Shown here piece by piece: positions 5,927-33,962 of a stretch of 64,000 nt of DNA. The translations under genes and the position numbers were made by a program. This DNA comes from Octopus sinensis (Eukaryota): NCBI RefSeq assembly GCF_006345805.1, contig NC_042998.1, forward strand, positions 197,594,001 through 197,658,000, in the 5' to 3' direction. Under the pieces are notes generated by a model that saw nothing but the letters and a program-made list of their open reading frames with translations, was not told where the DNA came from and ran no database searches. Position 1 is the stretch's first letter; each line of letters starts with the position of its first letter.

Positions 5927-6125
5927 CTGGGATTTCCATAAATGTCATATTAGACTTTATTTCTCGAGGCAACTCTTCCGGTATCGGAGAAACTCGAGGT
6001 TTGCCATCAAAAAAGTCCTTCCATGTTATTGATTGTATATCCTGGTTTCGGATATTCTGTAGACTTTCAATGAGGTAGGTAACAGGTGATGAAGGTTTGG
6101 ATAATATTAACCCAAACATTAGTCC
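5927..6125 (-). CDS. AK5: AK5-like adenylate kinase exon 2 (RIIa/Dpy-30-like docking domain)
   Basis: Acceptor ttgttacttag|GGA and donor CCAG|gtaagt; 199 nt, phase 0 to 1. GLMFGLILSKPSSPVTYLIESLQNIRNQDIQSITWKDFF aligns with human AK5 SLLNGLMCSKPEDPVEYLESCLQKVKELGGCDKVKWDTFV (recalled). Confidence 0.85.
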
Positions 6126-9100
6126 CTAAGTAACAAACCAAAATATACATTTTGTTTAAACCAATATAACTGTGATAATCAATGTAAAACAGAGGTTTTA
6201 GGAAAAAAAATTATCAGATGATTGTCGTACAAACACCATATTAAGATATGGAAATGGAATTCTTTAGAACACATTTTGTTATCTTTGCAAAGTTTCATCT
6301 CCAATTAAAACATCTCAAACACGTAAAAAGCACCCACTACACTCACGAAGTGGTTGGCGTTAGGAAGGGCATCCAACTGTAGAAACACTGCCAGATCAGA
6401 CTGGGGCTGGTGCAGCCTCCTGGCTTCCCAGATCCCCGGTCGAACCGTCCAACCCATGCTAGCATGGAGAACGGACGTTAAACGGTGATGATGATGATGA
6501 AACTCATCACCTCCTCTCTTCTATTATTGTGAGTGGAATTGGTTGGCAGCAAATAAAACTTCCTGTGAAGTTTGGCAGCCTCAGCTTCTACTTAGCATCT
6601 CATCATCATCATCGTTTAACGTCCGTTTTCCATGCTAGCAAGGGTTGGATGGTTTGACTGAGAACTGGCGAACCAGATGGCTGCACCAGACTCCAAATCT
6701 GATCTGGTAGAGTTTCTACAGCTGAATGCCCTTCCTAATGCAAACCATTCCGAGAGTGTAGTGGGTGCTTTTACGTGCCACTGGCATGAGGGCCAGTCAG
6801 GTGGTACTGGCAACAGCCACGCTCAAATGGTGCTTTTTATGTGCCTCCTGCACAGGAGCCAGTCCAGCGGCACTGGCAACGACTTCGCTTGAATGTTTTT
6901 TCATGTGCCACCAGCACAAGTGCCAGTAAGGCGACGCAGGTAACGATCACGCTCGAATGGTGTTTTTTATGTGCCACGGCATAGAGGCCAGCTTGTTGCT
7001 CTGGTAACGATCACGCTCGTATGGTACTCTTAGCGCTCTACAAGCAACAGATGCCAGTCATCGAATCTGATTTCGATTTCACTTGCCTCAACAGATCTTC
7101 GCAAGCAGAGTTTAGTGTCCAATGAAGGAGAGGTACACATAAGTGGACTGGTTATACCCCTGGCATAAGCCACAAGGTTATGGTCTCACTTGAGTTTGCT
7201 GAGTCTTCTCAAGCACAGCATATTTCCAAAGGTCCCGGTCACTAGTCATTGCCTCAGTGAAGCCCAATGTTTGAAGGTCATGCTTCACTACCTCATCTCA
7301 GGTCTTCCTGGGTCTACCTCTTCCACAGATTCCCTCAACCACTAGGGTGTGGCACATTTTCACACATCCATTCTCGCCACATGGCCCATACCAGCACATG
7401 GAATAACTGATTGCCCATCTTTCATGCAACATCTGTGGCTGAACACTGTAGTATTGTAAAGCATTTAAACAAAACACAGTAAACATACTTGTAATGTATT
7501 GATTGAACAAGCTATCCAGAATTCATTACATATGTAACGAGCGTGATCGTTACCAACGTCGCCTTACTGGCACCTGTGCCGGTGGCATGTGTAAAAAGAT
7601 TCGAGCGAGGTCATTGCCAGTACCACCTGACTGGCCCCCGTGCCATGGCACGTAAAAGGGCACCATTCAAGCGTGATCATTACCAATGTCGCCTTACTGG
7701 CACCTGTGCCGGTGGCATGTGTAAAAAGATTCGAGCGAGGTCATTGCCAGTACAGCCTGACTGGCCCCCGTGCTGATGGCACATAAAAAGCACCCACTAC
7801 ACTCTCGGAGTGGTTGGCATTAGGAAGGGCATCCAGCTGTAGAACCTCTGCCAGATCAAGATTGGAGCCTGGTGCAGCCATCTGGTTTGCCAGACCTCAG
7901 TCAAATCGTCCAACCCATGCTAGCACGGAATGCGGACGTTAAGCAATGATGATGATGATGATGATGTAAACTTCTCAGTCCATTTTACTTAAACCTCTTG
8001 TAATAGTGGGTCTATAAGCAGTATCTTCATGGATAGTTAAAGAGGGAACTCAGTCATCAAACAGGATGGGAGCTAGTCTGGTTGATCCTTCTTTTTCTAT
8101 CCACAAAGGTATGGTGTTTGTCTACACATAGTGTTGCAGGTCATTAGGTCATTTGCATCACAAAACTCTGTAAAGTGATTGGCGTTAGGAAGGGTGTCAA
8201 GACGTAGAAAGCATGCCAATGCAGACAGCATCGGCATGCTTTCTTATTTAATCGGGGTCAATTAAATAAGTACCAGTTATGCACTGGGGTCGTTGCAATC
8301 GATTTAATTTCTTTGTCTGTCCTTGTTTGTCCCCTCTATATTTAGCCTCTTGTGGGCAATAAAGAAATAAGAAATATTTAGATTCTGCTCTCATGAATGG
8401 AAAGTTGTTTTTAGTACCATTGCCGTTCTTCTTGAACTAAGGAGTTATATAAATGTCCACACTGCTTATACCCTTCAGCCATGGCTAATATTGATCCATA
8501 GGAGGCAACACTTTTTTACCCCCACTTCCCTCGAATATGCTATGACTTTTCACCCCATTTCACTCTGCTTCTTTCTACCTGCACTGAACCAGCGAAGACT
8601 ATGCATGCATTCAGCATAAAAAAGACTATGTGCTTCTGGCCAGCATGTCTGAGGAGTTATTGATATTGCCAAGGGCAGTAGTTGGCCTGAAACTGTAGAT
8701 TAACATTCTGACCAGTTATATGCCATAACCAATAATAGGCTGTTTGACAACGCACACATATACACATCGTTGTGTATCTTCACTCTCTTTACTCTTTTAC
8801 TTGTTTCAGTCATTTGACTGTAGCCATGCTGGAGCACCGCCTTTAATCGAGCAACTCGACCCCGGGACTTATTCTTTGTAAGACCAGTACTTATTCTATT
8901 GGTCTCTTTTGCCGAACCACTAAGTAACGGGGACGTAAACACACCAGCATCGATTGTCAAGCAATGCTAGGGGGACAAACACAGACACACATATATATAT
9001 ATATACATATATACGACAGGCTTCTTTCAGTTTCCGTCTACCAAATCCACTCACAAGGCATTGGTCGGCCCGGGGCTATAGCAGAAGACACTTGCCCAAG

Positions 9101-9403
9101 GTGCCACGCAGTGGGACTGAACCCGGAACCATGTGGTTGGTTAGCAAGCTACTTACCACACAGCCACTCCTGCGCCTATATCTAAAAAAAAAAAAAAAAA
9201 GCTGGACACTCTAAAGCATAGAGCAGAAATGTATTTATATGTAGTTGAGTCTATGTCTGGTCATAGAGTGACCAATGGTTTTAGCATCCACAAAGGGCTT
9301 AGCTCCAGAGATGGTTCATCAGACCTTAAAACTTTAGAGTCCGACAAGCCATCCATGGGGCTAAACCGTTTGTGGATGCGAAATGACTGGTCACTCTATG
9401 ACC

Positions 9404-9439
<36 letters not shown>

Positions 9440-9532
9440 TGAAAAAGTAGGGCAGAGATAGGAACTAGGTTTTGAGTGGTTGCCTTGTTAAGTTGGTTGG
9501 ATCACAAAAGCTTTTGTGATTGGTAATCGTCA

Positions 9533-9763
9533 GGCGGCGAGCTGGCAGAACCGTTTGCACGCCGGGCGAAATGCGTAGCCGTATTTCGTCTGTCGTTACG
9601 CTGTGAGTTCAAATTCCGCCGAGGTCGACTTTGCCTTTCATCCTTTCGGGGTCGATAAATTAAGTACCAGTTACGCACTGGGGTCGATGTAATCGACTTA
9701 ATACCTATGTCTGTCCTTGTTTGTCCCCTCTGTGTTTAGCCCCTTGTGGGTAATAAAGAAATA
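9533..9763 (+). mobile_element. tRNA-derived SINE family B (Nin/Deu-like central domain)
   Basis: ggcggcgagctggcagaa...gagttcaaattcc...gcctttcatcctttcggggtcgataaattaagtaccag...gtgggtaataaagaaatag. More than 10 copies, e.g. 28040-28231, 35160-36030, 43575-43975, 46540-46840, 52777-53006, 57270-57470. Confidence 0.88.
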
Positions 9764-9900
9764 GGTAATCGTCTCTTCATGATGATGACGACGATGATAA
9801 TGGCGACGACGACGACCAGGGCGACGTTGATGAAGATAATGAGTATTTATTCGGCTAACATGATACGTGATTACCACAACTTACGAATTTCTCCCCTTAC

Positions 9901-9960
9901 CTTGAATAACTCATGGATATTATATTTTGATAAATAGTCTTTAAACTCAGAGGCTTCCAT
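9901..9960 (-). CDS. AK5: AK5-like adenylate kinase exon 1
   Basis: ATG at 9960, 60 nt, donor AAG|gtaagg. MEASEFKDYLSKYNIHELFK matches human AK5 MNTNDAKEYLARREIPQLFE (recalled) and splices in frame to exon 2. The kinase domains are outside the window, so the AK5 name rests on the N-terminus only. Confidence 0.85.
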
Positions 9961-10331
9961 TCTAGCTGTTAGTATCTACTTTTCAAACGATAATGCTCAG
10001 AAGCAAAAATAAATGTATTCATTTAGAATACGTCGAAAGAATTCAATTTTTCAATTTCATTAAAAATAATAAACAAAACGAAATAGCGTTACGTCGCTAT
10101 TAGCAACATTTCAGTGACTGCTGAGAGTGTGACTTCCGGTTTGAAAACTACTATTGTGCTAAAATTAAAAAAAAATGACTTACTGTTTTTGCTCAACATA
10201 TATATAAAAAATATTATTTTAATATTAGAGTATCATATTTTTAATTATTACAGTCATATATGAAGAATAAAAGAATATATTTATTTATTGAGAGTAACGG
10301 TCCGGAAGTAGTTTTCCGTTTTTCCGCAAAC
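9961..10331. promoter_or_regulatory. Bidirectional promoter / 5' UTR region shared by AK5-like and PIGK
   Basis: 371 bp between divergent ATGs. Contains two oppositely oriented ETS-type motifs (ACTTCCGG 10132-10139, CCGGAAGT 10302-10309) and an RFX X-box-like GTCGCT-ATT-AGCAAC (10093-10107). This interval contains no SINE. Confidence 0.7.
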
Positions 10332-10427
10332 ATGGTGTCTATGTTGTCGTCTGTCATGGCTTTTGTCGGCAGTTTGGTGTTGTTCTTGTTGCTGTCGTCA
10401 TTCCACGGTGTCTGTGAAGCGAACGAG
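10332..10427 (+). CDS. PIGK: GPI-anchor transamidase PIGK exon 1 (signal peptide)
   Basis: caaacATG start; MVSMLSSVMAFVGSLVLFLLLSSFHGVCEANE is a hydrophobic signal peptide; donor GAG|gtaaat; 96 nt, in frame with exon 2. Confidence 0.9.
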
Positions 10428-13400
10428 GTAAATATATGCATATATAAATATGGCCAATATGGCGATCTTTCGTCTCTAGTAGACCTTTCCGTAAAAAACT
10501 TCTTTTTTTTTTACATATGGGCTTGCGGGAACTTTTGAAGTAATGAGAGCGAAAGAGACTAAGAGAAAGCGATTGTATGACGAGGGAAGTTCTTTTGAAG
10601 TTACCGTGCATGGGAAGCATTGGTGTACATGTGTGTGTGTGTGTTTGATGGGGTGTGGGAGACAGACAGTATGTTGTGTAAGTGAAGTGCTTCTGTTAGT
10701 GTGTGTGAAGAGACAGAGTAATGTGTGAAAGAAAGAGATAACTGAAATTTTTTACTCGGTGTATGTGTATATGTATGTATATTACTTCAAAAGTTCCCGC
10801 AAGCCCATATGTAAAAAACAAAAAAAAAATTTTACGGAAATCGACGGAAAGGTGTACTAGAGACGAAAGATCGCCATATATATATATATATATATATATA
10901 GAACTACTTTTAGCTTGGCGTTTTGGTTATTTCCGCGAATATTAACGAAAGTGCTTAACAATCGATTTACGGAAACGTATTCCTCTTGTAAGTTGTTATT
11001 TAAGCGTCAGGTCAGTCCTGGTCAAGCTGACCTATGGATGAAAAGTGCTCCAGCCGGCTTGAGACATGCATGTTTCTAGGTCAAGATTATCCGCTGTGTT
11101 CTTTTTCTCTAAGGAAATTATAACGACTATATAATGAATTATATATGAATGAAGGGTATTCATAACTGGGCTGATTACACTCACTGGCATGGGCCATGGG
11201 CTATGGTCTCACTTGGCTTGTCGGGTCTTCTCATCACAGCATATCTCCAATGGTCCCGGTCACTAGTCATTGCCTTGGTAAGGCCCAATGTTCAAAGGTC
11301 GTGGTTCACCACCTCCTCCCAGGTTTTCCTGGGTCTACCTCTTCCACAGGTTCCCTCAACTGCTAAAGTGTGACACTTTTTCACACAGCTGTCCTCATTC
11401 ATTCGCAATACATCACCATAGTACAATATAATGTTATATAGTTTATATGCAAAACATATGGCATACGGTTTATATGTGTACATGTACACATATTTCTCTT
11501 TTACTCTTTTCTCTTTTACTTGTTTCAGTCATTTGACTGCGGCCATGCTGGAGCACTGCCTTTAGTCGAGTAAATCGACCCCGAGACTTATTCTTTGTAA
11601 GCCCAGTACTTATTCTATCGGTCTCTTTTTTGCCGAACCGCTAAGTGACGGGGATGTAAACACACCAGCATCGGTTGTCAAGCGATGCTAGGGGGACAAA
11701 CACAGACACACAAACACACATATATATATATATACATATATACGACAGGCTTCTTTCAGTTTCCGTCTACCAAATCCACTCACAAGGCATTGGTCGGCCC
11801 GGGGCTATAGCAGAAGACACTTGCCCAAGATGCCACGCAGTGGGACTAAACCCGGAACCATGTGGTTGGTTAGCAAGCTACTTACCACACAGCCACTCCT
11901 GCGCCTATATATATATATATATATATAATAATAATAAATATTAGGGAATAAATCCAAATTTACAGGGAAAAATCAGATTTAGGATTAAATCGATTTTATA
12001 GTAAAATATTTTTGACTATTTATTAAAATTTTATGTATTGATTAAGTCTTTCCTTGTTTGTTTTGCAAAATAGTGGTTTTGTCTCTAATAATATTTTATA
12101 TATATATATATATAAAATCACCCACTACACTCTCGGAGTGGTTGGCGTTAGGAAGGGCATCCAGCTGTAGAAACACTGCCAGATCTGACTGGACTGGTGC
12201 AGCTTTCGGGCTCCCCAGACCCCAGTTGAACCGTCCAACCCATGCTAGCATGGAAAGCGGACGTTAAATGATGATGATGATGATGATGATGATATATATA
12301 TATCATCATTGTCATCATTTAACATCTGTTTTCTATGCTGGCATGGGTTGGATTGTTTGACAGGAGCTGGCCAGTTGAAGAGCTCCCCAGGCTCCCTGTC
12401 TGTTCTGGCATGGTTTCTATGGTTGGATACCCTTCCTAACACCAACCACTTTACTGAGTGTACTGGCTGCTTCTACACAGCATCAACACTGGTGCGTTTA
12501 TGTGGTACTGATACGGGTTTTTTTTTTCATGTGGCACCTGTATTTATGAGCACGCAAGATTAGGAATGGTCAGCTGGAGAGGGACGCAGGAGACAAGCCT
12601 GTATGCAAGGACGACCATGCTTTTACTTAGCTTGATATGTCTTTTCAAGCCCAGCAAACCACTAGGAGCCTTGGTCTCTTGTCATCACCTCTGTGAGTCC
12701 CAACATCTAGATTCTTCTTTAAGTTGTTGCGGTTTTTTAGTCTTGCCAACTATACGGTAGCTTCAGTAGCACTGGTCTCACAAGAATAACACCCAGTACA
12801 CTCTGTAAAGTGAAGATGGGCATCCAGCCATAGAAACCATGTCAAAACTGAGACATTGGAACACAGTGTAGTTCTCTGACTTGTCAGATCTTGTCAAATC
12901 ATCTAAGCCATACCAGCATGGAAGGCAAATATAAAATGATGATCACACACACACACATGCATGTGTGCATGCATGCATCGCCTTACTGGCACCTGTGCCG
13001 TTGGCATGTGTAAAAAGATTCGAGCGAGGTCATTGCCAGTACCGCCTGACTGGCCCCCGTGCCGTGGCACGTAAAAGGGAACTATTCGAGCATGATCGTT
13101 ACCAATGTTGCCTTACCGGCACCTGTGCCGGTGGCATGTGTAAAAAGATTCGAGCGAGATCATTGCCAGTACCGCCTGACTGGCCCCCGTGCCGTGGCAC
13201 GTAAAAGGGCGCCATTCGAGCGTGATCGTTACTAACGTCGCCTTACTGGCACCTGTGCCGGTGGCATGTGTAAAAAGATTCAAGCGAGGTCATTGCCAGT
13301 ACCGCCTGACTGACCCTAATGCCAGTGGCACGTAAAAAGCACCCACTACACTCTCAGAGTGGTTGGTGTTAGGAAGGGTATCCAGCTGTAGAAACACTGC

Positions 13401-13778
13401 CAAATTAAGATTGGAGCCTGGTGCAGCCATCTGGTTCGCCAGCCCTCAGTCAAAATCGTCCAACCCATGCTAGCATAGAAAGCGGACGTTAAACGATGAT
13501 GATGATGATGATCTATATGTTTGTCTGTGTGTATCTGTACACATGTTAATAATTGGTTTCCTCATTCAAGATAAAGCAGTTATTTATTCAGAAAGTATAA
13601 TCCCCTGATATATACAGTTAATCATGACAAGTTTGCTGGCCATATTTAATGTATGAGGAAGTACCGATTACCTTCCTGGAGCACAAGGTCATCGTGTGAA
13701 ACAAACAGAAACCTCAGTACAAGTGAGCCTCTACACGGTCATTTGAATTACTAGAAATAGCTGCCAAATTTCCTTTAA

Positions 13779-13999
13779 CCCTTTAGTGTTCGTATTATTC
13801 TGCCAAAATTAATACTTTTTTATCCTCATTGTTTTGAACTAATCATGCATTATCTTGTAGCTATGAGATTTTGATGAGGTAGCTGTTAATTTTTAAAACG
13901 ATATTGTAGGGTTGGTGTGAGAGACCAGATCTGGCCAGTTTGACCATAAAACAGGCAGAATACTTTTGGCCGGATATGGCCGGTTTAATTGCTAAAGGG
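13779..13999. mobile_element. piggyBac-type MITE family A
   Basis: TTAA|CCCTTTAG ... CTAAAGGG|TTAA. Further copies at 36228-36448 and 40365-40585; split copies at about 16100-16815 and 58370-58510. Confidence 0.85.
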
Positions 14000-15926
14000 T
14001 TAAATCACTCCCTGTTGTCTTATTGAAGGATACTTTGAACAGTGTATCCCTGTATATACAAAAAGAGCAGATTGTTACAACTGCAACACCTTTGATCATT
14101 GAACTGACCTGAGGTTAAACAGTAACAACTACTGGAACTAAGTGTGGTGCATGTAACAAAACTGGTTGTTGCTATGTAAATTGGCACCTGGGAATTGTGG
14201 TCATTGACAGTTCCAGGTAAATATGCACTCGTGAGTTGTAGTTGTTGCAGGTGCCATGCAAATAGCACCCATGAATTGTAGTCATGGTCACCACTGATAC
14301 CATGTAATTGGTATCTTATGGCAAAAAATGAGTTGGTCAAAGATTGCACCAATCCGACCGTGGCCGATGCCAGCCTCGCCTGGCACCTGTGCAGGTGGCA
14401 TGTAAAAAGCACCCACTACACTCACGGAGTGGTTGGCGTTAGGAAGGGCATCCAGCTGTAGAAACACTGCCAGATCAGACTGGAGCCTGGTGCAGCCTTC
14501 TGGCTTCCCAGATCCCCGGTCGAACCGTCCAACCCATGCTAGCATGGAAAGCGGACGCTAAACTATGATGGTGATGATGATGATGATGAAGTCTCTTGGA
14601 TCAGAGCTGACTTGAGGCAAAACAGCAACAACATTTAGTATATAGCCCTAAATATTTGCAACTCCTAAAACCTGTAGCTAATAATACATCCTTAATATTG
14701 TCAACACATCTTAACTATGGCTGCATTGAGTAACAGCCCTAAATATCATCAGCATGTCACCAAAACTTTTGTTACATGATGTTTCAGCCTTACACATAAT
14801 CAAAAAATCTAAACTTTGGTTACATGGAGTGGCAAGTCTTAACATGATTTAAATGTAAGCAATACATTTTGAGGAGGTAATCAACCCCGATACTTGATTG
14901 TTAATTACTTTATCAACCCTGTTAAACCAGAGGGATTTGAACTTAGCATGTAAAAGGATTTAACTGAATACCACGTATCATTTTGTCCTCTGTTGCTTTA
15001 TTGATTCTGTCAATCCACTATTTTAGATATGGTGAGGATGGCAACGACTGAATTTCAATGATGTTATTGGTGATTCTCATCATCATCAACATCAACATCA
15101 TTTAGTATCTATTTTCCCTGCTGGCATGGGTTAGACGGTTTGACAGGAAGTGGTAAGCTGGAGAATGTACCAGGTATCCAATCTGATTTTGGCATGGTTT
15201 CTATAGCTGGATGCCCTTCCTAACACCAATCACTCCAAGAGGGTAGTTCTAAGAATATAAAGTAGATTTAGAGCGATACGTTAACTGAATTTCAAAGGTG
15301 TACTTGTCATGCGAGTGATTTGATCTGAGATCATGTGTTGAAACTAAAATGATTGCAGCCTGGAAGATACATATTAGCCGTTCAGAATCACATGAAGATT
15401 GTCAACTTCACTTCAACGTTTATTATTTGCTGTCGGAATTTTTGTCACATAAACCAGGACCTGGTCACTGGTGTGTGTTTTGAATGGCTGAAGTTTGCAC
15501 AAATTCATCATCGTTTCATCGTTTAACGTCCGCTTTCCATGCTAGCGTGAGTTGGACGATTTTGACTGAGGGCTGGCGAACCAGATGGCTGCACCAGGCT
15601 CCAATCTTGATCTGGCAGAGTTTCTACAGCTGGATGCCCTTCCTAACGCCAACCACTCCGATAGTGCAGTGGGTGCTTTTTACGTGCCATCGGCACGGAG
15701 GCCAGTCAGGCGATACTAGCAACGACCTCGCTCGAATCTTTTTACGCATGCCACCGGTACAGGTGCCAGTAAGGCAACGCTGGTAACGATCACGCTCAAA
15801 TGGTGCCTTGTGATCAATAAATCTCATTTCTATTCTCTTATCTCCTGTTTACTTTAACGTCTTCTTTCACTTTCAATTTCCCATAAATCAAATCACTTGA
15901 CTGTTTTGTTTCTGTTTTACTTCTAG

Positions 15927-16072
15927 GACAAAGTTAATGAATTTTTCCAAAGTGGACACACAAATAACTGGGCTGTGCTTGTGGATACATCCCGGTTTTG
16001 GTTCAATTATCGTCATGTGGCCAATGTATTATCTATTTATCGAAGTGTAAAGCGATTAGGAATACCAGATAG
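15927..16072 (+). CDS. PIGK: PIGK exon 2
   Basis: ttctag|GAC ... GATAG|gtaaac; [48 protein letters not shown], the hallmark C13 peptidase/GPI8 N-terminal motif; 146 nt. Confidence 0.97.
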
Positions 16073-16178
16073 GTAAACAATTTGATCATGCATTTAACCT
16101 TTAAGCATTCAGATTACTCTGTGAAATCTAATGCTTCTTTATTCATGTTGTTTTGAATTAATTATGTATTATCGCATA

Positions 16179-16690
16179 CCGTAAATCCTCGAGTATAATC
16201 CGCATTTTCCCCCAAAAATTTAAAGGTCAAAATCCATAGTGCGTACTATATACGAGGTTAAAAATGAAAATTATTTTCTAAGCAATGTTCGAGTCTCTAT
16301 TTGCTGTCTGGCAATGTTTATTCAGACGCATTTTGTGATGTCGGGCGCGAAAATACCTTAAGCTAAGCCTGAAAGCAATGAAGCCATAAAAGAATCATCC
16401 ATAACTTGCAGTAAGCAACATTTATTAAACGTTATTACTGTTATTTCTTTATTTTCTGCAGACAAAATGCACAAAAACGCTACACGTTTGTATTATGTTA
16501 TATATACAATAATAATAAAGGACGTTACCGTATACATTTTTACAAACCATGGATGTTATATAGACCTCCTTGACTCAAGTTAGAGAAGGGGTGTGTATTA
16601 TACACAAGGTTTAGGTTTTTCAGAGATACAGTCCCCTAAAAATCCCCTGCGTATTATACTCAAGGGTGGACTATACTCGAGGATTTACGG
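16179..16690. mobile_element. Tc2/pogo-type MITE nested in a piggyBac MITE
   Basis: TA|CCGTAAATCCTCGAGTATA ... TATACTCGAGGATTTACGG|TA. Further copies and fragments at 58135-59405 and 61478-61690. Confidence 0.82.
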
Positions 16691-18834: not shown

Positions 18835-18893
18835 TCACATTATATTGATGGTTGCTGATGATATGGCCTGTAATGCTAGGAACCCTCATCCTG
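18835..18893 (+). CDS. PIGK: PIGK exon 3
   Basis: ttttacag|T ... CCTG|gtgagt; (S)HIILMVADDMACNARNPHP, including the Cys equivalent to human C92 that bonds PIGT; 59 nt. Confidence 0.95.
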
Positions 18894-19835: not shown

Positions 19836-19875
<40 letters not shown>

Positions 19876-20709
19876 GGCGCAGGAGTGGCTGTGTGGTAGG
19901 TAGCTTGTTTGCCAACCACATGGTTCTGGGTTCAGTCCCCCTGCGTGACATGTTGGGCAAGTGTCTTCTACTATAGCCTCGGGCCGACCAAAGCCTTGAG
20001 AGTGGATTTGGTAGACGGAAACTAAAAGAAGCCTGTCGTATATATGTATGTATATATATGTATGCGTGTGTGTGTTTGTATGTCTGTGTTTGTCCCCCTA
20101 GCATTGCTTGACAACCGATGCTGGTGTGTTTATGTCCCCGTTACTTAGCAGTTTGGCAAAAGAGATCAATAGAATAAGTACTGGGCTTACAAAAGAATAA
20201 GTCCCGGGGTCGAGTTGCTCGATTAAAGGCGGTGCTCCAGCATGGCCGCAGTAAAAAACGACTGAAACAAGTAAAAGAATAAAAGAAAGAAAGAATATAT
20301 ATGAGGAAATACTTTGTGTGCATGCACACACACACACATGCGTATTTGCACAGCATTAGGTTTAGTCTATGAAGGTGTATGTTACAAGGCTGTGTTTGAA
20401 GCTGTCCAGCTGATACAAATCATTAAGTGAGAAAAGTATTTCCACACTTATTTGATAATGATAAATCAAAAAGCCATGTCCATAAATCGTAGTTTGTCGT
20501 CATACCTATATATATAATCTTGTGACTAGACGTGTGTGTGTGTGTGTGTATAATGGATTAAACTATGTATCTTCTTTTAACTAATTATACAGCTGTGTGA
20601 CAGAATCACAAGAAATTAGCTTAATGTAAAGAGAAAGAGATTTGAAGGAACATGATATAAGAGACTGCCTTTAGAGGATACCAAAAAGAAAAGCCTCTGC
20701 TAATGTTAA

Positions 20710-21099
20710 CCCTTTCGTTACTGTATTTATTTTGAGATGTTCTGTGTTTCTTTCACTTAATTTTAATTATAACAAAGAATTTAGTAAAATAACTTAGTCA
20801 TCATTTAGCTGGTGTTAGGAACATAAATTGTGACTAAGGTTTGATGGAAGATTTTAATTCAAAACTTATGAAAACAAGACATTTGTATTACAGAGCCAGA
20901 GCCGGTTTCAGCCGGGTTGGTAATGAAAGGGTTAAATATAACAAAAAATTTAGTAAAATAACTTAGTTATCATTAAACTAGTGTTGGGAACCTAAATTGT
21001 GACTAAGGTTTGGTGGAAGATTTTAATTCAAAACTTATGAAAACAAGACATTTGTACTCAGAGCCAGAGGCGGTTTCAGCCGGGTTGGTAACGAAAGGG
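20710..21099. mobile_element. piggyBac-type MITE family B with partial tandem duplication
   Basis: TTAA|CCCTTTCGTTAC ... GTAATGAAAGGG|TTAA (20710-20931), then a repeat of its 3' part to 21099. An inverted copy lies at 33274-33493. Confidence 0.82.
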
Positions 21100-21337
21100 T
21101 TAAGGCACCTATGTTGAAAAAACAAAGTGTATCATTTTATAGTGAGTTTCTACAAAGTTCTCATCTCTTTTCCTTCATATTTTGGTACAAAGGCTATCAA
21201 AATAGATACAAAGTTTAAGCAGAGATACTGTAAAATTGAATCCAGGGAGTGATCTGCTACACAAGTTTATATTTTTAAACATTTCAGTTTAAAAGTCAAT
21301 GCACAAGAGATAATATTGCTACTTTTGGTTTTTTCAG

Positions 21338-21414
21338 GTACTGTATTTAATAATGCTAACCAGCACATAAACGTTTATGGTGATGATGTTGAAGTGGATT
21401 ACCGTGGATACGAG
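21338..21414 (+). CDS. PIGK: PIGK exon 4
   Basis: ttttcag|GT ... GAG|gtaggg; (G)TVFNNANQHINVYGDDVEVDYRGYE; 77 nt. Confidence 0.95.
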
Positions 21415-24400: not shown

Positions 24401-25093
24401 TCTGGCTTCCCAGACCCCAGTTGAACCGTCCAACCCATGCTAGCATGGAAAGCGGACGCTAAACAATGATGATGACTCCTGCTTATAGGTATATAAGTAG
24501 ACAGCCTTACGGTACACTCACACACTTTCACAAATAAACCCTTTTTCTCACTCTCACAGACTTTCTCCCTTCTTACTAATTTCTCTGCCACCTCTACCTT
24601 GTCTTGATACTCACCTTGCAGTCATTTGTGTACTCACTACATTCTTACATGCTTCCAAACTGAGCCACTCACGCACATCATCATCATCATCATCATCATT
24701 TAATGTCTGTTTTCCGCGCTAGCACGGGTTGGACGGTTCGACCGGGGTCTGGGAAGCCAGGGGCTGCTCCAGGCTCCAGTCTGATCTGGCAGAGTTTCTA
24801 CGGCTGGATGCCCTTCCTAACGCCAACCAATCCGCGAGTGTAGTGGGTGGTTTTTACGTGCCACCGACACAGGTGCCAGTGGGGGGGCGGGGGTCCGGCA
24901 TCGTCCACGATCGGTTGGAGCTTTTAACATGTCAGTGGCACGGAAGCCAGCCAAGGCAGCGCTGGCAACGTTCGGATGGTGCTTTTTATGTGCCACCGGC
25001 ACAGAAGCCAGTCGGGGCGGCGCTGGCATCGGCTTGTTAATTCCCTGGCATCGGCCTGTTAATTCCTTGTTAATTCCCTGTTTCTCTTTCCAG

Positions 25094-25205
25094 GTAACTG
25101 TGGAGAACTTTGTACGTGTCTTGACTGGCCGTCTTCCTCCCAGCACTCCGCGATCCAAAAGACTGTTGTCTGATGAGAGAAGCAATATTTTAGTCTACAT
25201 GACTG
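25094..25205 (+). CDS. PIGK: PIGK exon 5
   Basis: ctctttccag|GTA ... ACTG|gtaagt; VTVENFVRVLTGRLPPSTPRSKRLLSDERSNILVYMT; 112 nt. Confidence 0.97.
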
Positions 25206-26145
25206 GTAAGTTTCTTTAGTATTACTTCAGTGTTGCTAAAAACAAATTACAAAATAAGTGTGATTGTGTGGTAAGAAGATTGCATGCCAATCATATGGTT
25301 CCAGGTTCAGTCCCACTGTGTAGCAGGGTATATGTGGGTATATGTCTTCTACTAAAATGCCAGGCTGAGCAAGGCCTTCATCATCATCATCATCATCGTT
25401 TAACGTCCGTTTTCCATGCTAGCATGGGTTGGACGGTTCAACTGGGGTCTGGGAAGCCAGGGGCTGCACCAGGCCCAGTCTGATCTGGCAATGTTTCTAC
25501 GGCTAGATGCCCTTCCTAACGCCAACCACTCCGAGAGTGTTGTGGGTGCTTTTTATGTGCCACCTGCACAGGTGCCAGGGGGGTCCGGCAAACGGCCACA
25601 ATCGGATTGGTGCATTTTACGTGCCACCGAAGTGGATTTAGTTGACAGAAACTGAAAAAGCCCATTATATATATATCGCAGGTGTGGCTGTGTGGTAAGA
25701 AGCTTGCTCCCCATTCACATGTTTCTGGGTTCAGTCCCACTGTGTGACACCTTGGGCAAGTGTCTTCTACTACAGCCTTGAGCAAACCAAAGTCTTGTGA
25801 ATAGATTTTGCACATAGAAACGGGAAGAAGCTTGTCTTATCTTATATATATATGTGAATTTTTCCCTGTAAGTTAGGATTAATATTCCTTCAAATAATTA
25901 TTATATATATATATGTATGTATGTATATATATGTCTATATATATGTATATAAATATATGTATATATATATGTGTGTCTGTGTATGTATATATATATGTAT
26001 ATAAATATATGTATATATATGTATATATATGTGTGTGTGTATATATATATATATAGTTAATCCAAACAAGAAAACACAAAAAAACACAACAATGCGAGGA
26101 CGTGGAACAAATATAGTATTATTGGACGCTCAGGAAAGAAGGAGG

Positions 26146-26180
26146 GTTTGACGTTTCGAGCGGAGCTCTTCGTCGGAAAC
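26146..26180 (-). ncRNA. Minimal hammerhead ribozyme motif (U4C variant) in a Penelope-like remnant
   Basis: Minus strand gttt-CCGACGA-a-gagc(tcc)gctc-GAAA-CG-TC-aaac: palindromic ACGT helix III and GUC site, typical of Penelope-like minimal hammerheads. Confidence 0.5.
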
Positions 26181-26709
26181 ATAGGAGAAGGAAAGATCCA
26201 GAAAAGGGAAGACAGAGGAAAAAAAATCGCCAACGGTACACATGAGGTCACATTTTGAAAATATATATATATATATATATATATAGGGAGAATTCACAAA
26301 AAACGAAAGACAAAGACAGGTGGTGTACACAACAAAACAGATGTATTAGTTTAACACTCAGGAAGTGAGAAAGTCTTTAAGTAACACGTTTGTTTCTGTA
26401 TTTTATGTTGTTTACTGTTGGTGACGTCCTGTACCCATATATGCACATACATATACATACATACATTTATATATATATACAACAATTGCAGCATGGAAGG
26501 TGTTTATAAGCCATTTAAGAAATACACAAAAAAACGTTAGATTCACTTTCACATCATTTAAATTTAATTTGTCGAAATATTTCCGTCGCTTTGAGACCGC
26601 GACCTTTTCACTGACAAAACTCCGTGCTGCACGGAGGTGCAGCATATACATACACATGCATACTTGCACAAAAAATGCACATATACCTCCCCAAACAACC
26701 CCTCGTTCA

Positions 26710-27757
26710 CATACACACATACGCACACGCAAAATACACATGCCCATACATACACACACACACACACACATGTACACACGCACATACATTCACACACACA
26801 CACACACATGTACACACGCACATACATTCACACACACACATGTACACACGCACATACATTCACACACACACATGTACACACGCACATACATTCACACACA
26901 CACACACATGTACACACGCACATACATTCACACACACACATGTACACACGCACATACATTCACACACACACATGTACACACGCACATACATTCACACACA
27001 CACATGTACACACGCACATACATTCACACACACACATGTACACATGCCCATACATACACACACACACACACACATGTACACACGCACATACATTCACACA
27101 CACACATGTACACACGCACATACATTCACACACACACATGTACACACGCACATACATTCACACACACACATGTACACACGCACATACATTCACACACACA
27201 TGTACACATGCCCATACATACACACACACACACACACATGTACACACGCACATACATTCACACACACACATGTACACACGCACATACATTCACACACACA
27301 CATGTACACACGCACATACATTCACACACACACATGTACACACGCACATACATTCACACACACACACATGTACACACGCACATACATTCACACACACACA
27401 TGTACACACGCACATACATTCACACACACACACACATGTACTCACGCACATACATTCACACACACACACAAGCACATACACACACATGTACACACGCACA
27501 TACATTCACACACACACACATGCACATACACACACATGTACACACGCACATACATTCACACACACACACACATGTACACACGCACATACATTCACACACA
27601 CACACATGCACATACACACACATGTACACACGCACATACATTCACACACACATACATATATACACACGCGCACACATACACATGCACGCGCAAATGAACC
27701 CACACATACCTTTAATACACACACAACACACACTCATACATACACGCACACAATTAT

Positions 27758-27791
<34 letters not shown>

Positions 27792-27822
27792 GCGCATGCA
27801 CGCACGCACACACACACACACA
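26710..27822. repeat. CA-rich minisatellite, about 30-bp unit cacatgtacacacgcacatacattcacaca(ca)n
   Basis: Direct reading of roughly 30 units in PIGK intron 5; explains the 357-447 aa His/Thr ORFs. Confidence 0.95.
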
Positions 27823-28611
27823 GCTGAAATTAAAACTGTATGAAGGTTACGAAACGACGGCAATCGTATGAACATCAATATGGAAAAACGACTTCACCCC
27901 CCTCACCCCTTCTGGCTTTATAATATATAGGGGAGGTAATTTATGTCTGCATGCACGGGGTAGCAACACACAAGGGAAATAACCCTGTTGAGACTTGAAC
28001 AAAATGTGTTTTATGTTGGCTGATTGGTACCATGTGTGTAGCACGCCGGGCGAAATGCTGTTACGTTCTGAGTTCAAATTCCGCCGAGGTCGACTTTGCC
28101 TTTCGTCCTTTCGGGGTCGATTAAATAAGTACCAGTTACGCACTGGGGGTCGATGTAATCGGCTTAATACCTATGTCTGTCCTTGTTTGTCCCCTCTGTG
28201 TTTAGCCCCTTGTGGGTAATAAAGAAATAGGTACCATGTGTGTGAGGGGGGAACTAGAAGCTGAAGAATATTTGGGCTCAGCTGATAAACTGATGTACAC
28301 TATCATTTGCTATTGTTTTCATCGACTTCCGTATTGAAAGGGGTTCAGGTATGTCTTCAATATTGTGTTCCTCTGGTTATCTTAATTTTTTGAGTTCCAA
28401 ATTTGAAAAAGTCCATTGCTCCAGCTTGGGACATTGGATGCTTGATTGATGATGATAATATCAATTTTTTCTACTTTAAACATTTCTACCCTTTTTTTTT
28501 TTTTTTTTTAAAGATGTCAAGGTTTGATTTGAGGGAGATTTATTTGCTATTTTTAGTTAGTCAAGTGAATGCGTAGAAGATCCCTCACTGTGTTGATATT
28601 TTTTTGTACAG

Positions 28612-28708
28612 GACACGGAGGTGACGGATTCTTGAAGTTCCAGGACTCTGAAGAAATATCCAATGTAGAACTAGCTGATGCCTTTGAACAGATGTGGCAA
28701 AAGCGGAG
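28612..28708 (+). CDS. PIGK: PIGK exon 6 (catalytic His, GHGG)
   Basis: tttgtacag|GA ... CGGAG|gttggt; (G)HGGDGFLKFQDSEEISNVELADAFEQMWQKR; 97 nt. Confidence 0.97.
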
Positions 28709-29261
28709 GTTGGTCCCTTCTAGTTTTCTCCTCCCCTGCCTCTCTCACTCACTCATCACCACCACCACCACCACACCACTACTCCCACTATCATTGCCAT
28801 CATATCCTACTTTCACCATTAGGTCCCACTTTACACTCATTACTACTGCCAGTACAACTATCACCACTGCTGCTATCTCATCACTTCTACAACTACTACC
28901 ACCACCACTATCGGCACCACCACTCCTGCTAATTCTACATGTTTCTATTAGAAAACAGTACAGCTCCCATGAAACATTTTTTCACACTAAGAGTTGCTGA
29001 AGCATGGAACAAACTGCCAGCATCAGTTGTTAGTTGTCGGAGCAATGCATCCTTCAAAACTTCCATGCTTCCTGAGATTCGCCAACACTACACCTGATTT
29101 TCTCCCCTCCATACACTCGCAAGCATGTATCTGACTCATACACTGTTCACTTCCCAGACATTTGTACACCACTGCATGTGCTTTATACACACTTTTGACA
29201 AGTTGTGGTGCACCTGAACACTGTATACAATAATTTCATTATTATTATTATTATATTATAG

Positions 29262-29379
29262 GTACCATGAAATATTTTTCATGATAGACACATGCCAAGC
29301 TGAATCAATGTATCAGAAGTTTTATTCCCCCAATATTTTAGCTGTGGCCAGTAGCCATGTTGGAGAAGATTCACTCTCA
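29262..29379 (+). CDS. PIGK: PIGK exon 7 (catalytic Cys, DTCQ)
   Basis: attatag|G ... TCA|gtaagt; (R)YHEIFFMIDTCQAESMYQKFYSPNILAVASSHVGEDSLS; 118 nt. Confidence 0.97.
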
Positions 29380-30159
29380 GTAAGTGTCTCACTATTAACT
29401 ACCTTATACTTCACTAATAACTACTTTATACTTCACTATTTACTACTTTAAGCCTCTCTATTAACTATTTTATATTTCATTGCTTAATTACTTTATACCT
29501 TACTTTTAATTGCTTTAGTTCTCTTTTTGTTCTCTGGCATGTCTGTGCCGGTGGCACATAAAAAGCACCATCCGAATGTGGCTGATGCCAGTGCCGCCTT
29601 GTCTGGCTTCTGTGTCGGTGGCATGTAAAAAGCACCAACTGATTGTGGCCGCTGGCAGCCCCCCCTGGCACCTGTGCCAGTGGCACGTAAAAGGCACCCA
29701 CTACACTCATGGAGTGGTTGGCGTTAGGAAGGGCATCCAGCTGTTGAAACACTGCCAGATCAGACTGGAGCCTGGTGCAGCCTCCTGGCTTCCCAGACCC
29801 CGATCGAACCATCCAACCCACGCTAGCATGGAAAACGGACGTTAAACGATGATGATGATATTAATGTTATCAAGACTGAAAAAAAATATTGTCAACATCT
29901 CACTAATTGTCCTCAATACCTCACTTATTGTTCTGGGTTGATAAACTCCACTAGCTGCCAGCAGTTCCTCACTAAATATCCTTTCTTTATCAAAAGCATT
30001 ATAAAATGCTTTTGATGAAGAGACTTGCTCAAAAATTTACACAACCTTGATTTTATGCAATCACAGTGTAATTGTCATTGAAAGACGTGTGATGATGTTA
30101 TAAGTTGATTATTTCAAACTATATCCTCCTATGCTATTTGTGTGTGTGTGTATATATAA

Positions 30160-30490
30160 AAATTAGAAAAAACCAAAATGAACAATTAAATTACACCATC
30201 TAGAAAATTACATATAATAGAAATATTAAAAATGAAATAACAATAATGTACTAATGATTAAGTAAATTGCAAAATAATAATAAAAACGTATATATTTGGT
30301 ATTTTATTTTTAATATTTCTATTATATGTAATTTTCTAGATGGTGTAATTTAATTGTTCATTTTGAATTGATAAAGGTGGGTTTTTTTCTAATTTATATA
30401 TATATATTATATTTTGTGAAATTTGATTTAGTATTTCTAAATTGAATTTTTCACTGCAAGTTAGGAATAATAGTCCCTCAAATAATTATT
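30160..30490. mobile_element. Penelope-like end sequences in inverted arrangement
   Basis: aaaattagaaaaaacc...caccatctagaaaattacatataatagaaatattaaaa followed by its reverse complement; same sequence as 19750-19835. Confidence 0.45.
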
Positions 30491-30499
30491 ATATATATA

Positions 30500-31090
30500 T
30501 ATCATCATCATCATCATCATCATCGTTTAACGTCCGCTTTCCATGCTAGCATGGGTTGGACGATTTTGACTGAGGGCTGGCGAACCAGATGGCTGCACCA
30601 GGCTCCAATCTGATCTGGCAGAGTTTCTACAGCTGGATGCCCTTCCTAATGCCAACCACTCCGAGAGTGCAGTGGGTGCTTTTTACGTGCCACCGGCATG
30701 GGGGCCAGTCAGGCGGTACTGGCAACGACCTCGCTCGAATCTTTTTACACATTCCACCGGCACAGGTGCCAGTAAGGCGACGTTGGTAACGATCACGCTT
30801 GAATGGTGCCCTTTTACGTGCCACTGGCACGGAAACAAGTTGGCTGCTCTGGCAACGATCACGCTCGGATGGTGCTCTTGGTACCTTACTAGCATGGGCA
30901 CAAGTGCTAGTGAGGTGACGCTGGTAACGATCACACTCAAATGGTGCCTTTTAAGTGCCACTGGCTCAGAAGCCGGTTAGCCGCTCTGTCAATGATCATG
31001 CTCATATGGTGCTCTTTGCACCCTGCTAGCACGGACGCCAGTCATCGAATTTGTTTTGATCTTGATTTTGATTTTGATTGATTTCACTTG
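30500..31090 (-). mobile_element. Family D retroposon ((GAT)n tail, variable internal gtgccaccggcac modules)
   Basis: ...ggcgttaggaagggcatccagctgtagaaac...agcatggaaagcggacgttaaacgatgatgat. More than 25 copies across the window on both strands; this family is the source of most MAAPGS.../MLAWVG... ORFs. Confidence 0.88.
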
Positions 31091-31305
31091 TCTATATATA
31101 TATATATATATACTTTATTTAAAGCAGCAGAAAATTCAACAAAACCTGTTACTCTGAGTTTCCTGTTGCTGTTCATCGGCAACGGGAAACTCAGAGTAAC
31201 AGGTTTTGTTGAATTTTCTGCTGCTTTAAATAAAGCATATTACTCTACCACTGGTATTTGAGTACTCTTTTTTTCCACCTTGTTTCACATTTATGTGTTT
31301 ACTCC

Positions 31306-31343
<38 letters not shown>

Positions 31344-31408
31344 TTAATGTGTGTTACTGTAAATCTCTAGTGTATTAATTACTGCAATGCTTCCTTCTTT
31401 GTTTGTAG

Positions 31409-31519
31409 CATCACGTTGACCCAGCTATTGGTGTATATGTCATTGATCGCTACACATACTATGCTTTAGAGTTCCTCGAACAAGTCACACCAACTAGTAA
31501 AAAAACACTCGGACAATTT
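31409..31519 (+). CDS. PIGK: PIGK exon 8
   Basis: tttgtag|CAT ... TTT|gtatgt; HHVDPAIGVYVIDRYTYYALEFLEQVTPTSKKTLGQF; 111 nt. Confidence 0.95.
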
Positions 31520-31628
31520 GTATGTATATCTACTGTTTTCTTTGTGTTTCTTTCATAAATATTGTGCTCGCTGCATTACATTTTACTGTAATAAATCTCA
31601 CTCTTTCTTCATCTGTTATTTCTATCAG

Positions 31629-31810
31629 TTGCGTGTTTGCCCTCAGAAGCAGTGCATTTCCCGTGTGGGTGTCCGAACAGACCTGTTCAAACGAGACACA
31701 GAGAAGGTTCTACTCACAGACTTTTTTGGCAGTGTTCGCAATGTGGAATTACTGTCTGATATCGTGGATTTAGAGAAAATTATTCCTGAGCAGAAAAATG
31801 TATCTTCTAG
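31629..31810 (+). CDS. PIGK: PIGK exon 9
   Basis: tctatcag|TTG ... TCTAG|gtaagt; LRVCPQKQCISRVGVRTDLFKRDTEKVLLTDFFGSVRNVELL...; 182 nt. Confidence 0.95.
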
Positions 31811-33553
31811 GTAAGTTGTTATTTAGTTATCAAGTCAGCTCTGATTCCAGAGGCCTATAAGTAGAAGGTGTTCTATAACCATTCCTCTTTTTGTATATCC
31901 AGGGCTATATTATCCAATACATTTGTAGTGACGTCATATTCCAGTGTGCGCACGCGCAACGCCATTCTTCAGTGTGCGTGTGTGGGGTTGGAACCTTCTG
32001 GAACCTTCTGGAAAGGCATAAGGAAGTTCCCTCATGCACATGCGCTAGAGACTGGGGAAGAAATTCTATCGCGTTCCTTAATAGCGTCGTTGACTTGAGA
32101 CACGGCTACAGAAGAGAAAGGACGTATTTTTAAACGTGTGATCAGCCTATTCTCCTGTCCCAGACGCTTAGGATTTAACCTGTTATATTAATGCTGAATT
32201 GTTGTAAGAAACTTACAAACGTTTGAATTCAGCCTTGCTGTGTTGAACTAGGTGGATACCAGTATACCATCGTGTTTCATTTGTGAATAAGAGAATAAAG
32301 AATTATATATATTTTTAAACTTGCGTTTCGTTCCTGATTGGTGGTTCTAGAAACAAAAAGAAAGGAAATTGTGTTGCACCCAAGTTGTACCCCAAAAGTG
32401 TAAAGAAGCAACCAGTTCCCTTTACACATTCTTCTGTTTTGGCAATGGATAATATACAACAGATGAATAATTGCCTTGTTGGCAATGGCTGATGGGAGGA
32501 TGGTTATCAATAAACCATACAGTTAACTGCATTGATCTCAGTCTTTTTATCCAGACAAAACTAATAAAAAATCCCAAAGCCCCTCACACCCATTGACATA
32601 TCTTGATAAGCATGTGGTAGCCATCTTCCTTTGTACAATGGAAATTGTAGCTGTGGTACCAGTGCCAGTGGCACATAAGAGAACCATCCGGACTTGGCCA
32701 TTGCCAGCGCCGCCCCGACTGGCCTCTGTGCTGGTGGCAGGTAAAAAGCACCATCTGATCGTGGCCATTGCCAGCCTCGTCTGTCTCCCGTGCCGGTGGC
32801 TGGTAATAAGAGCCCTATCCGATCGTGGCCGTTTGCCAGCCTCGTCTGGCCCCCGTGCCGGTGGCAGGTAATAAGAGCCCTATCCGATCGTGGCCATTGC
32901 CAGCCTCGTCTGGCCCCCGTGCCGGTGGCAGGTAAAAAGCACCATCTGATCGTGGCCGTTTGCCAGCCTCGTCTGGCCCCCATGCCGGTGGCAGGTAAAA
33001 AGCACCATCCGATCGTGGCCGTTTGCCAGCCTCGTCTGGCACCTGTGCAGGTGGCATGTAAAAAGCACCCACTACACTCACGGAGTGGTTGGCGTTAGGA
33101 AGGGCATCCAGCTGTAGAAACACTGCCAGATCAGACTGGAGCCTGGTGCAGCCTTCTGGCTCCCCCAGTCCTCAGTCAAACTGTCCAACCCATGCCAGCA
33201 TGGAAAGCGGACGTTAAATGATGATGATGATGATGATGATGATCATTATTTACTTTGTAGTTATAATTATTAACCCTTTCGTTACCAACCCGGCTGAAAC
33301 CGGCTCTGGCTCTTTAGTATAAATGTCTTGTTTTCATAAGTTTTGAATTCAAATCTTCCACCAAACCTTAGTCACAATATATTTTCCTAACACTAGTTGA
33401 ATGATAACCGAGTTATTTACTAAATTCTTTGTTATATTTAATGTAATTGAAAGAAACACAGAGCATCTCAAAATAAATACAGTAACGAAAGGGTTAATGT
33501 CTCTGTCTGTCCAACTTTAGGTTGATATGGTATCTTTATTTTCCTCTTTTCAG

Positions 33554-33620
33554 GTCCCATGTGACAGATGGACCAAAACCCCAAGAACGACTCACCTATG
33601 TCAATCAGTTTCCCGTATGA
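33554..33620 (+). CDS. PIGK: PIGK exon 10 (probable last coding exon)
   Basis: ttcctcttttcag|G; (R)SHVTDGPKPQERLTYVNQFPV then TGA TAA. ERLTYVNQFPV matches human EPLKYAEQLPV (recalled). Total CDS 354 aa. Confidence 0.8.

Positions 33621-33921: not shown

Positions 33922-33962
<41 letters not shown>

Follow-up and report, generated by a model that had tools for sequence, protein, structure and literature searches.

In this study, we analysed a stretch of 64,000 nucleotides from Octopus sinensis (NCBI RefSeq assembly GCF_006345805.1, contig NC_042998.1, positions 197,594,001 to 197,658,000 of the forward strand; in the following, the window), in which the gene PIGK and a gene for an AK5-like protein of the adenylate kinase (ADK) family were found to lie head-to-head with 371 bp between their start codons. 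Based on a comparison with other animal genomes, we consider it quite likely that the two form a conserved pair of PIGK and a docking-domain gene of the AK5 type, which diverges from one promoter region of about 370 bp and is at least as old as the separation of molluscs and annelids, and probably bilaterian. An initial annotation, made from the window sequence, had proposed that the two genes have stayed linked since the protostome-deuterostome split and that a shared compact promoter kept them together.

The divergent ATGs were located at 9960 (AK5-like, minus strand) and 10332 (PIGK, plus strand), and the AT-rich interval between them (9961–10331) revealed a G+C content of 27%. These positions and the spacing of 371 bp had been given correctly to the base in the initial annotation, as had its outer bounds, with 5927 being the final base of AK5-like exon 2 and 33620 the final base of the PIGK stop codon. 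Barring upstream non-coding exons, the two transcription starts would lie at most 371 bp apart, and the pair, measured by its ATGs, thus falls within the intergenic distance of less than 1 kb that has been treated as a signature of bidirectional promoters (PMC3514665). All exons and candidate regulatory sites of the locus are compiled in Table 1.

For the survey of gene order, the genomic neighbourhoods of PIGK or AK5-like proteins were inspected with flanks of 10 kb. The same head-to-head arrangement as in the window was identified in O. vulgaris (493-aa ADK-family partner, 373 bp), in the gastropod Patella vulgata (1233-aa partner with several ADK domains, 363 bp), in the bivalve Crassostrea angulata (997-aa partner, 355 bp), and in the annelid Owenia fusiformis (993-aa partner, 411 bp). 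The orientation is therefore 5'-5' in all five lophotrochozoan loci (two Octopus, Patella, Crassostrea, and Owenia), and in cephalopod, gastropod, bivalve, and annelid alike, the spacing from ATG to ATG stayed between 355 and 411 bp despite a many-fold expansion of the introns. By our own estimate, molluscs and annelids separated more than half a billion years ago, and the spacing has been stable since. In Sinanodonta woodiana, the two genes were found on consecutive locus tags (_040002 and _040003), and in Mizuhopecten, PIGK and the AK5-like gene were assigned to scaffolds of equal length (342,298 bp), which are most likely one scaffold. At the nucleotide level, the octopus locus was 96–98% identical to O. 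vulgaris chromosome OX597815.1 throughout. A tight pair is thus demonstrated for molluscs and annelids, and the linkage outside octopus, for which the initial annotation had suggested a look at other molluscs and an annelid, was borne out in Patella, Crassostrea, and Owenia.

The plus-strand gene was complete in the window and comprised 10 coding exons for a protein of 354 aa, with a TGA stop codon at 33618–33620. Its assignment to PIGK (GPI8), which encodes the catalytic subunit of the GPI-anchor (glycosylphosphatidylinositol-anchor) transamidase, in the initial annotation was confirmed by an identity of 98% to the GPI-anchor transamidase of O. vulgaris (E=1.5e-217) and of 69–78% to the PIGK proteins of eight further animals from several phyla, among them amphioxus, echinoderms, and a priapulid; the Pfam domain Peptidase_C13 (PF01650) was present in all homology matches listed. 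The catalytic His/Cys dyad is intact (TGHGG and DTCQA), with both residues in invariant columns of the alignment. A C-terminal transmembrane helix, which is present in human PIGK, was not found in the octopus protein, which ends in YVNQFPV. Since the PIGK models of limpet, oyster, and Owenia also end in QFP(MP)V without such a helix, its absence seems to be typical of the lineage and not a defect. As a side observation, the end of PIGK exon 5 in O. vulgaris (about 28185–28197 of its locus) displayed a 2-bp difference from window positions 25195–25205 (TACATGACTG to TATGACTG), and the annotated O. vulgaris protein consequently reads VYDWGGHGG and not the universally conserved VYMTGHGG. It reflects either a mistake in the assembly or a genuine lesion next to the catalytic His.

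Judged by sequence comparison and gene order, the minus-strand gene is identified as the positional orthologue of AK5 and not as another docking-domain protein. Within the window, its exons are three only, encoding the N-terminal docking domain, and no ADK exon of this gene was found within the 64 kb. While all coordinates of AK5-like exons in the initial annotation were right, the partial third exon (66–1) had been missed and was located by tblastn with the AK5 protein of O. bimaculoides. Further evidence on the identity of the gene came from its counterparts in other species. In O. vulgaris, the 493-aa ADK-family protein is annotated from the same ATG at 373 bp from that of PIGK, its ADK matches being faint. 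In O. bimaculoides, a protein of 533 aa named adenylate kinase isoenzyme 5 (XP_014775120.1, P0121) has a docking domain and, after it, two domains of the ADK fold (Pfam E=1.2e-15), and its N-terminus is 76% identical to that of the window. This protein came out of a full HMMER scan in which the 86 aa of the octopus N-terminus were compared with representatives; for the same 86 aa, a word-indexed homology search gave no match, and a homology search with a profile of the docking domain returned short open reading frame (ORF) fragments of 50–156 aa only. Against the PDB, XP_014775120.1 revealed human AK5 (2BWJ) as the best adenylate kinase (E=6e-7), with yeast UMP kinase scoring equally.

Exons 1 and 2 of the window gene could also be aligned to the N-terminal ends of multi-ADK proteins from scallop, starfish, and acorn worm that carry the NCBI name AK5-like and start M[ST][ST].DAK.YL..REIP.LFESLMTGLMYHRP, and the partners of PIGK in Patella, Crassostrea, and Owenia start M[ST][ST].DAKSYL..RE.P.LFE. 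For the latter three loci, tblastn confirmed AK5-type first and second exons as well as ADK exons. The human AK5 sequence that served as a tblastn probe, and as a probe only, approximates the protein and is not an exact database sequence; the partners were 65–70% identical to its N-terminus. A first exon of 60 nt with a phase-0 GT donor is common to the window, O. vulgaris, Patella, Crassostrea, Owenia, and Saccoglossus. The AK5-like identity proposed in the initial annotation is thus upheld by the ADK-family gene of O. vulgaris, the named AK5 of O. bimaculoides, and the multi-ADK genes at the same position in other lophotrochozoans.

Compared with O. vulgaris, exons 1 and 2 of the AK5-like gene differed at 1 of 259 bases and the intron at about 2.3% (Poisson P about 0.015), which argues for purifying selection on the N-terminus of the protein. 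The profile of the docking domain matched the axonemal protein EFCAB10 (entry 9fqr, E=5e-6), the docking domain of PKA RI-alpha (E=0.012), and FAP385 of Chlamydomonas (E=0.022). Independently of this gene, a second family of short docking-domain proteins (GIPQLFECLL…PPDP…INWE[ST]F), distinct from the PIGK neighbour, was detected in octopods and other molluscs, with members in O. bimaculoides (113 aa, P0262) and Argonauta hians (P0265), besides P0260.

Regarding the catalytic part, the AK5-like proteins of limpet, oyster, scallop, and Owenia harbor about four ADK domains in approximately 1000–1230 aa, and all four domains of the scallop protein retain the P-loop and the catalytic Arg and Asp residues. 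In the AK5 of O. bimaculoides, both ADK-like domains are without the P-loop glycines and threonine (G18/G20/T23-type), and most equivalents of AK1 residues R44, R97, R138, D140, D141, and R149 are lost. The octopus AK5-like protein is therefore probably a docking-domain pseudo-kinase and not an active enzyme, as far as the residues of O. bimaculoides can be transferred to the window species, whose ADK exons are located outside the window. With respect to domain number, the two-domain AK5 of vertebrates may be a shortened form; the two C-terminal ADK domains of the scallop protein were closer to AK1 than to AK5.

Analysis of the interval revealed several candidate promoter elements. With both strands counted, the 64 kb contain two copies of the ETS/GABP-type motif CCGGAAGT, versus 0.63 copies expected by shuffling, and both fall inside the 371 bp, where they are divergently oriented, each facing its nearer gene. 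Crassostrea carries GACTTCCGGT at the position that matches the octopus site 10132–10139, the sole CCGGAAGT of the 26-kb oyster locus lies in its PIGK/AK5-like interval, and out of five CGGAAG cores in the 35-kb limpet locus, two are found in the interval there; putative ETS cores are enriched in the intervals of Patella and Crassostrea, too. In addition, each of the five lophotrochozoan loci contained a match to the X-box-like pattern GTHNYY N1-3 RRNAAC at 90–133 bp upstream of the AK5-like ATG, and the background of this pattern in these loci amounted to 0.23–0.72 matches per kb; in Saccoglossus, no X-box-like match was found. Octopus, oyster, and limpet share the order of these motifs, i.e., the X-box-like element and then, 21–25 bp on, an ETS core (CGGAAG). 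As counted from sequence, the content of predicted motifs exceeds chance, unlike the freedom of the interval from repeats (see below).

Based on these elements, we propose that two overlapping core promoters would lie within the interval and that the divergent ETS/GABP-type sites would drive both of them, and that the two genes might be co-regulated. The AK5 side would also be driven by the X-box-like (RFX-type) element of a ciliary programme, followed in the three mollusc lineages by the ETS-type core CGGAAG 21–25 bp on. GABP sites have been described to suffice for making human promoters bidirectional (PMC2077898). Likewise, AK5 was reported to be induced by FOXJ1, and adenylate kinases of high molecular weight are found in cilia and flagella of sea urchins (reviewed in PMC2680645), which fits an RFX-type element at this position. 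With so little room between the ATGs, one gene or both would be harmed by any insertion or breakpoint, which could be why the pair and its spacing have outlasted the spread of repeats and the rearrangements in the coleoid genome.

Several results weigh against the interpretation as a bilaterian pair with a common promoter, and they have to be considered together with the alternatives. With regard to age, human PIGK and AK5 are presumably divergent as well, with PIGK on the minus and AK5 on the plus strand. According to hg38 coordinates published in a genome-wide association study (GWAS; PIGK chr1:77,088,989-77,219,430, AK5 chr1:77,282,019-77,559,966), they are neighbours with 62.6 kb between them, in agreement with the adjacency over tens of kb that the initial annotation had stated; at this distance, a shared core promoter is not the link between the human genes. 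The compact promoter as a constraint thus fits the lophotrochozoans with their 355–411 bp and shared motifs, but it does not hold at the human locus. Furthermore, no AK5-like partner was found within 10 kb of PIGK in amphioxus, the starfish Patiria, or Priapulus, where PIGK instead stands head-to-head with a DSPc phosphatase gene; no partner within 10 kb was detected in the crinoid Anneissia or in a spider, whose AK5 N-terminus is an intronless copy, and starting from the AK5 side, no PIGK within 10 kb in Saccoglossus. These results were accompanied by tblastn checks; since flanks of 10 kb are blind to a spacing like that of vertebrates, they are weak. A scan of metagenomes with the PIGK profile revealed 80 loci with no ADK domain or AK5 N-terminus nearby, and as these loci were mostly intronless (probably cDNA, fungal, or protist), they are uninformative for animals. 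Linkage since the protostome-deuterostome split is accordingly backed by lophotrochozoans and vertebrates only, the six remaining taxa having revealed no partner inside the 10-kb flanks. One could assume that the tight pair arose on the lophotrochozoan stem and that the vertebrate adjacency came about separately, so that there would be no bilaterian microsynteny. Such an independent juxtaposition would agree with the missing linkage within 10 kb in every sampled invertebrate deuterostome and ecdysozoan and with intergenic distances that differ about 170-fold, but we regard it as quite unlikely, given that we put the chance of one given gene ending up directly beside another at about 1 in 10,000 for each lineage, that the order has been kept from human to pigeon, where a quantitative trait locus (QTL) interval reads USP33, ZZZ3, AK5, PIGK, ST6, and that the inspected flanks would miss vertebrate-like distances. 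A probable bilaterian age is the most parsimonious reading of the occurrence in both lophotrochozoans and vertebrates.

With regard to the promoter and the partner gene, bidirectionality and the binding of RFX and ETS factors are suggested by motif evidence, and the sites are candidate elements. The X-box-like pattern was set after inspection of the sequences, one half-site of the octopus copy is weak, and no ETS core was found in the Owenia interval. The comparison of the interval with O. vulgaris likewise gave no sign of constraint: its identity was 98.6% (divergence 1.4%) compared to 97.3–97.7% in the flanking introns (about 2.3% and 2.7% of aligned bases in the two introns compared), and 5 mismatches versus about 9 expected are not a significant difference, so that this candidate indication was rejected. 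It is conceivable, and in our view unlikely, that the pair persisted neutrally, with 370 bp being a tiny target for breakpoints and insertions, and with independent abutting promoters that share no element and no co-regulation. PIGK lies head-to-head with other genes in Priapulus (276 bp) and amphioxus (479 bp), which shows that its promoter tolerates other partners, the functions of the two genes differ (GPI anchoring in the endoplasmic reticulum versus a ciliary-type kinase), and repeat-free blocks of such a size are common in the window. Neutral persistence, however, does not readily account for a spacing held in four lineages while introns expanded many-fold, nor for the order of X-box-like element and ETS core common to octopus, oyster, and limpet; it also overlaps with the explanation by a shared promoter region, since abutting core promoters are a constraint, too. 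A stricter version of that explanation, in which a fixed module of about 370 bp (X-box, ETS core 21–25 bp on, second ETS site by the PIGK start) goes back to the lophotrochozoan or bilaterian ancestor and in octopus still locks PIGK to a catalytically dead pseudo-kinase, is possible and rather doubtful. If it were true, the constraint would be regulatory, with PIGK relying on promoter elements of its neighbour and not on the neighbour's enzymatic function. Finally, the ADK domains of the scallop orthologue matched AK1 (3e-71) better than AK5 (2e-51) in the PDB, and the case for orthology is thus built on the N-terminal domain together with domain architecture and genomic position. The comparison with adenylate kinase paralogues that the initial annotation had called for is accordingly split, human AK5 being the best adenylate kinase for O. 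bimaculoides, while the scallop protein is closer to AK1 and there is no clean reciprocal best hit. That the minus-strand gene is some other protein with a RIIa/DPY30-type docking domain, or a decaying pseudogene, and that the promoter serves PIGK only, would match the lone docking domain in the window without an ADK exon, the empty word-indexed search, the existence of the second docking-domain family in octopods, and the loss of nearly all catalytic residues in O. bimaculoides together with the faint ADK match in O. vulgaris. We nevertheless consider this very unlikely in view of intact frames of 493 and 533 aa with docking and two ADK-fold domains in two other Octopus species, the same position as the bona fide multi-ADK genes of limpet, oyster, and Owenia, an identical first exon and intron phase, and the low divergence of exons 1 and 2 (1 of 259 bases versus 2.3% in the intron).

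The interval is located in a unique block without repeats (9773–10431, 659 bp), whereas its flanks consist of 45–61% repeated DNA and about half of the 64-kb window is repeated within itself. The block is bordered on one side by a tRNA-type short interspersed nuclear element (SINE; 9532–9772), which follows AK5-like exon 1 after about 130 bp, and on the other side, from 10446, by an inverted repeat resembling a miniature inverted-repeat transposable element (MITE), whose terminal inverted repeats of about 100 bp (10446–10545 and 10775–10880) are situated in PIGK intron 1, about 20 bp past the donor of exon 1. The initial annotation had pointed to the absence of SINEs from the interval. This holds as an observation, but it turned out to be weak evidence, because 14% of random 371-bp windows and 5% of random 659-bp windows of this sequence are likewise free of repeats; as a sign of constraint, it was rejected (p of about 0.14).

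Irimia et al. (2012, Genome Res 22:2356; PMC3514665) described about 600 conserved ancestral microsyntenic pairs (CAMPs), which are enriched in 5'-5' orientation and short intergenic distances and part of which were attributed to bidirectional promoters. PIGK and the AK5-like gene fit this class: like CAMPs such as HSPE1-HSPD1, they are unrelated, adjacent across phyla, and, in lophotrochozoans, kept in 5'-5' orientation at less than 1 kb from each other. Unlike HSPE1-HSPD1, the human genes are 62.6 kb apart and their products have no obvious functional link. Literature searches on PIGK or AK5 and synteny gave GWAS and QTL papers only, and the pair did not come up as a case of synteny in any main text searched, the supplementary list of Irimia et al. 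not being covered; it was also not among the rows listed in cephalopod microsynteny tables. The interval further resembles mammalian bidirectional promoters driven by GABP/ETS (Collins et al. 2007, PMC2077898) in having divergent genes less than 1 kb apart and CCGGAAGT strongly enriched and in both orientations. Mammalian bidirectional promoters are usually CpG islands, whereas the octopus interval, a candidate promoter, has 27% G+C, and its sites, CCGGAAGTC and CCGGAAGTA, depart from the strict CCGGAAGTG.

As in vertebrate AK5 and the flagellar adenylate kinase of high molecular weight from sea urchin (Kinukawa et al. 2007, as cited in PMC2680645), an N-terminal RIIa/DPY30-like domain is followed by tandem short-type ADK domains. 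Like human AK5, the octopus gene neighbours PIGK, and its X-box-like motif would be in line with the induction of AK5 by FOXJ1. The number of ADK domains differs, with about four in limpet, oyster, scallop, and Owenia versus two in human AK5, and unlike known AK5, the octopus protein (two domains, read in O. bimaculoides) is devoid of the P-loop glycines and the catalytic Arg and Asp residues. Conserved head-to-head pairs have already been described by the hundreds, and one more leaves this picture unchanged. Nevertheless, the pair offers a clean test case, as it combines a conserved spacing that persists in a rearranged, repeat-rich genome, a short list of candidate elements accessible to mutation, and an enzymatic function that one partner has apparently lost in octopus. 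This combination allows one to test directly whether shared promoter elements or gene function hold such pairs together. In addition, the PIGK neighbour can serve as a positional anchor for AK5 orthologues of invertebrates, where similarity of the catalytic domains alone points to AK1.

Table 1. Exons of PIGK and of the AK5-like gene and candidate regulatory sites in the 64-kb window of O. sinensis.
Feature	Position	Strand	Remarks
AK5-like exon 3, partial	1..66	-	(G)LMPEGNIPDGVPSLESPEENI..., continues past the left window edge; AG acceptor 68-67
AK5-like exon 2	5927..6125	-	remainder of the RIIa/DPY30-like docking domain (GLMFGLILSKPSSPVTYLIESLQNIRNQDIQSITWKDFF...)
AK5-like exon 1	9901..9960	-	60 nt, 20 codons from ATG, MEASEFKDYLSKYNIHELFK, phase-0 gtaag donor
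Candidate bidirectional promoter	9961..10331		371 bp between the ATGs, repeat-free
X-box-like palindrome GTCGCTATTAGCAAC	10093..10107		pattern GTHNYY N1-3 RRNAAC, 133 bp upstream of the AK5-like ATG
ETS/GABP-type site CCGGAAGT	10132..10139	-	oriented towards AK5-like; one of the two window copies
ETS/GABP-type site CCGGAAGT	10302..10309	+	oriented towards PIGK, ends 22 bp before its ATG
PIGK exon 1	10332..10427	+	signal peptide, opens MVSMLSSVMAFVGSLVLFLLLSSFHGVCEANE, then gtaaat donor
PIGK exon 2	15927..16072	+	coding exon
PIGK exon 3	18835..18893	+	coding exon
PIGK exon 4	21338..21414	+	coding exon
PIGK exon 5	25094..25205	+	coding exon
PIGK exon 6	28612..28708	+	catalytic His (TGHGGDGF)
PIGK exon 7	29262..29379	+	catalytic Cys (IDTCQA)
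PIGK exon 8	31409..31519	+	coding exon
PIGK exon 9	31629..31810	+	coding exon
PIGK exon 10	33554..33620	+	ends RLTYVNQFPV, then TGA stop

Apart from the AK5-like gene, other neighbours of PIGK were noticed in the surveyed loci. In Priapulus, the gap to the DSPc phosphatase gene amounts to 276 bp (locus 1064–9725), and in amphioxus, PIGK is located head-to-head at 479 bp with a gene for a protein of 155 aa that revealed no Pfam match (locus 7781–9522); judging from such arrangements, bidirectionality seems to be a habitual property of the PIGK promoter. Downstream of PIGK in the starfish Patiria miniata, a gene for a Glyco_transf_29 sialyltransferase was found tail-to-tail (locus 28527–32018), and in human, ST6GALNAC5 presumably adjoins PIGK. 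Together with the order 'PIGK, ST6' in pigeon, PIGK and a sialyltransferase gene may form a second, deuterostome-wide microsyntenic pair.

In the window itself, several interspersed repeat families were detected. A family of about 400 bp was represented by at least nine copies (8779–9200, 11495–11917, 19874–20294, 33687–34139, 36619–37026, 38358–38792, 39743–40173, 47034–47438, and 60106–60529). A CA/TG-rich block of low complexity at 26400–27900 displayed a GC skew of -0.43 and an AT skew of +0.34 and gave rise to a spurious ORF of 472 aa (HTHTHT), and long microsatellites of the AAT/ATT type at 51550–52120 and about 62620–63570 resulted in poly-Asn, poly-Ile, and poly-Tyr ORFs in all frames. 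On the minus strand, two adjacent and nearly identical copies of about 350 bp (58489–58839 and 58875–59219), each with an ORF of about 115 aa, resemble a tandem duplication (period about 386 bp).

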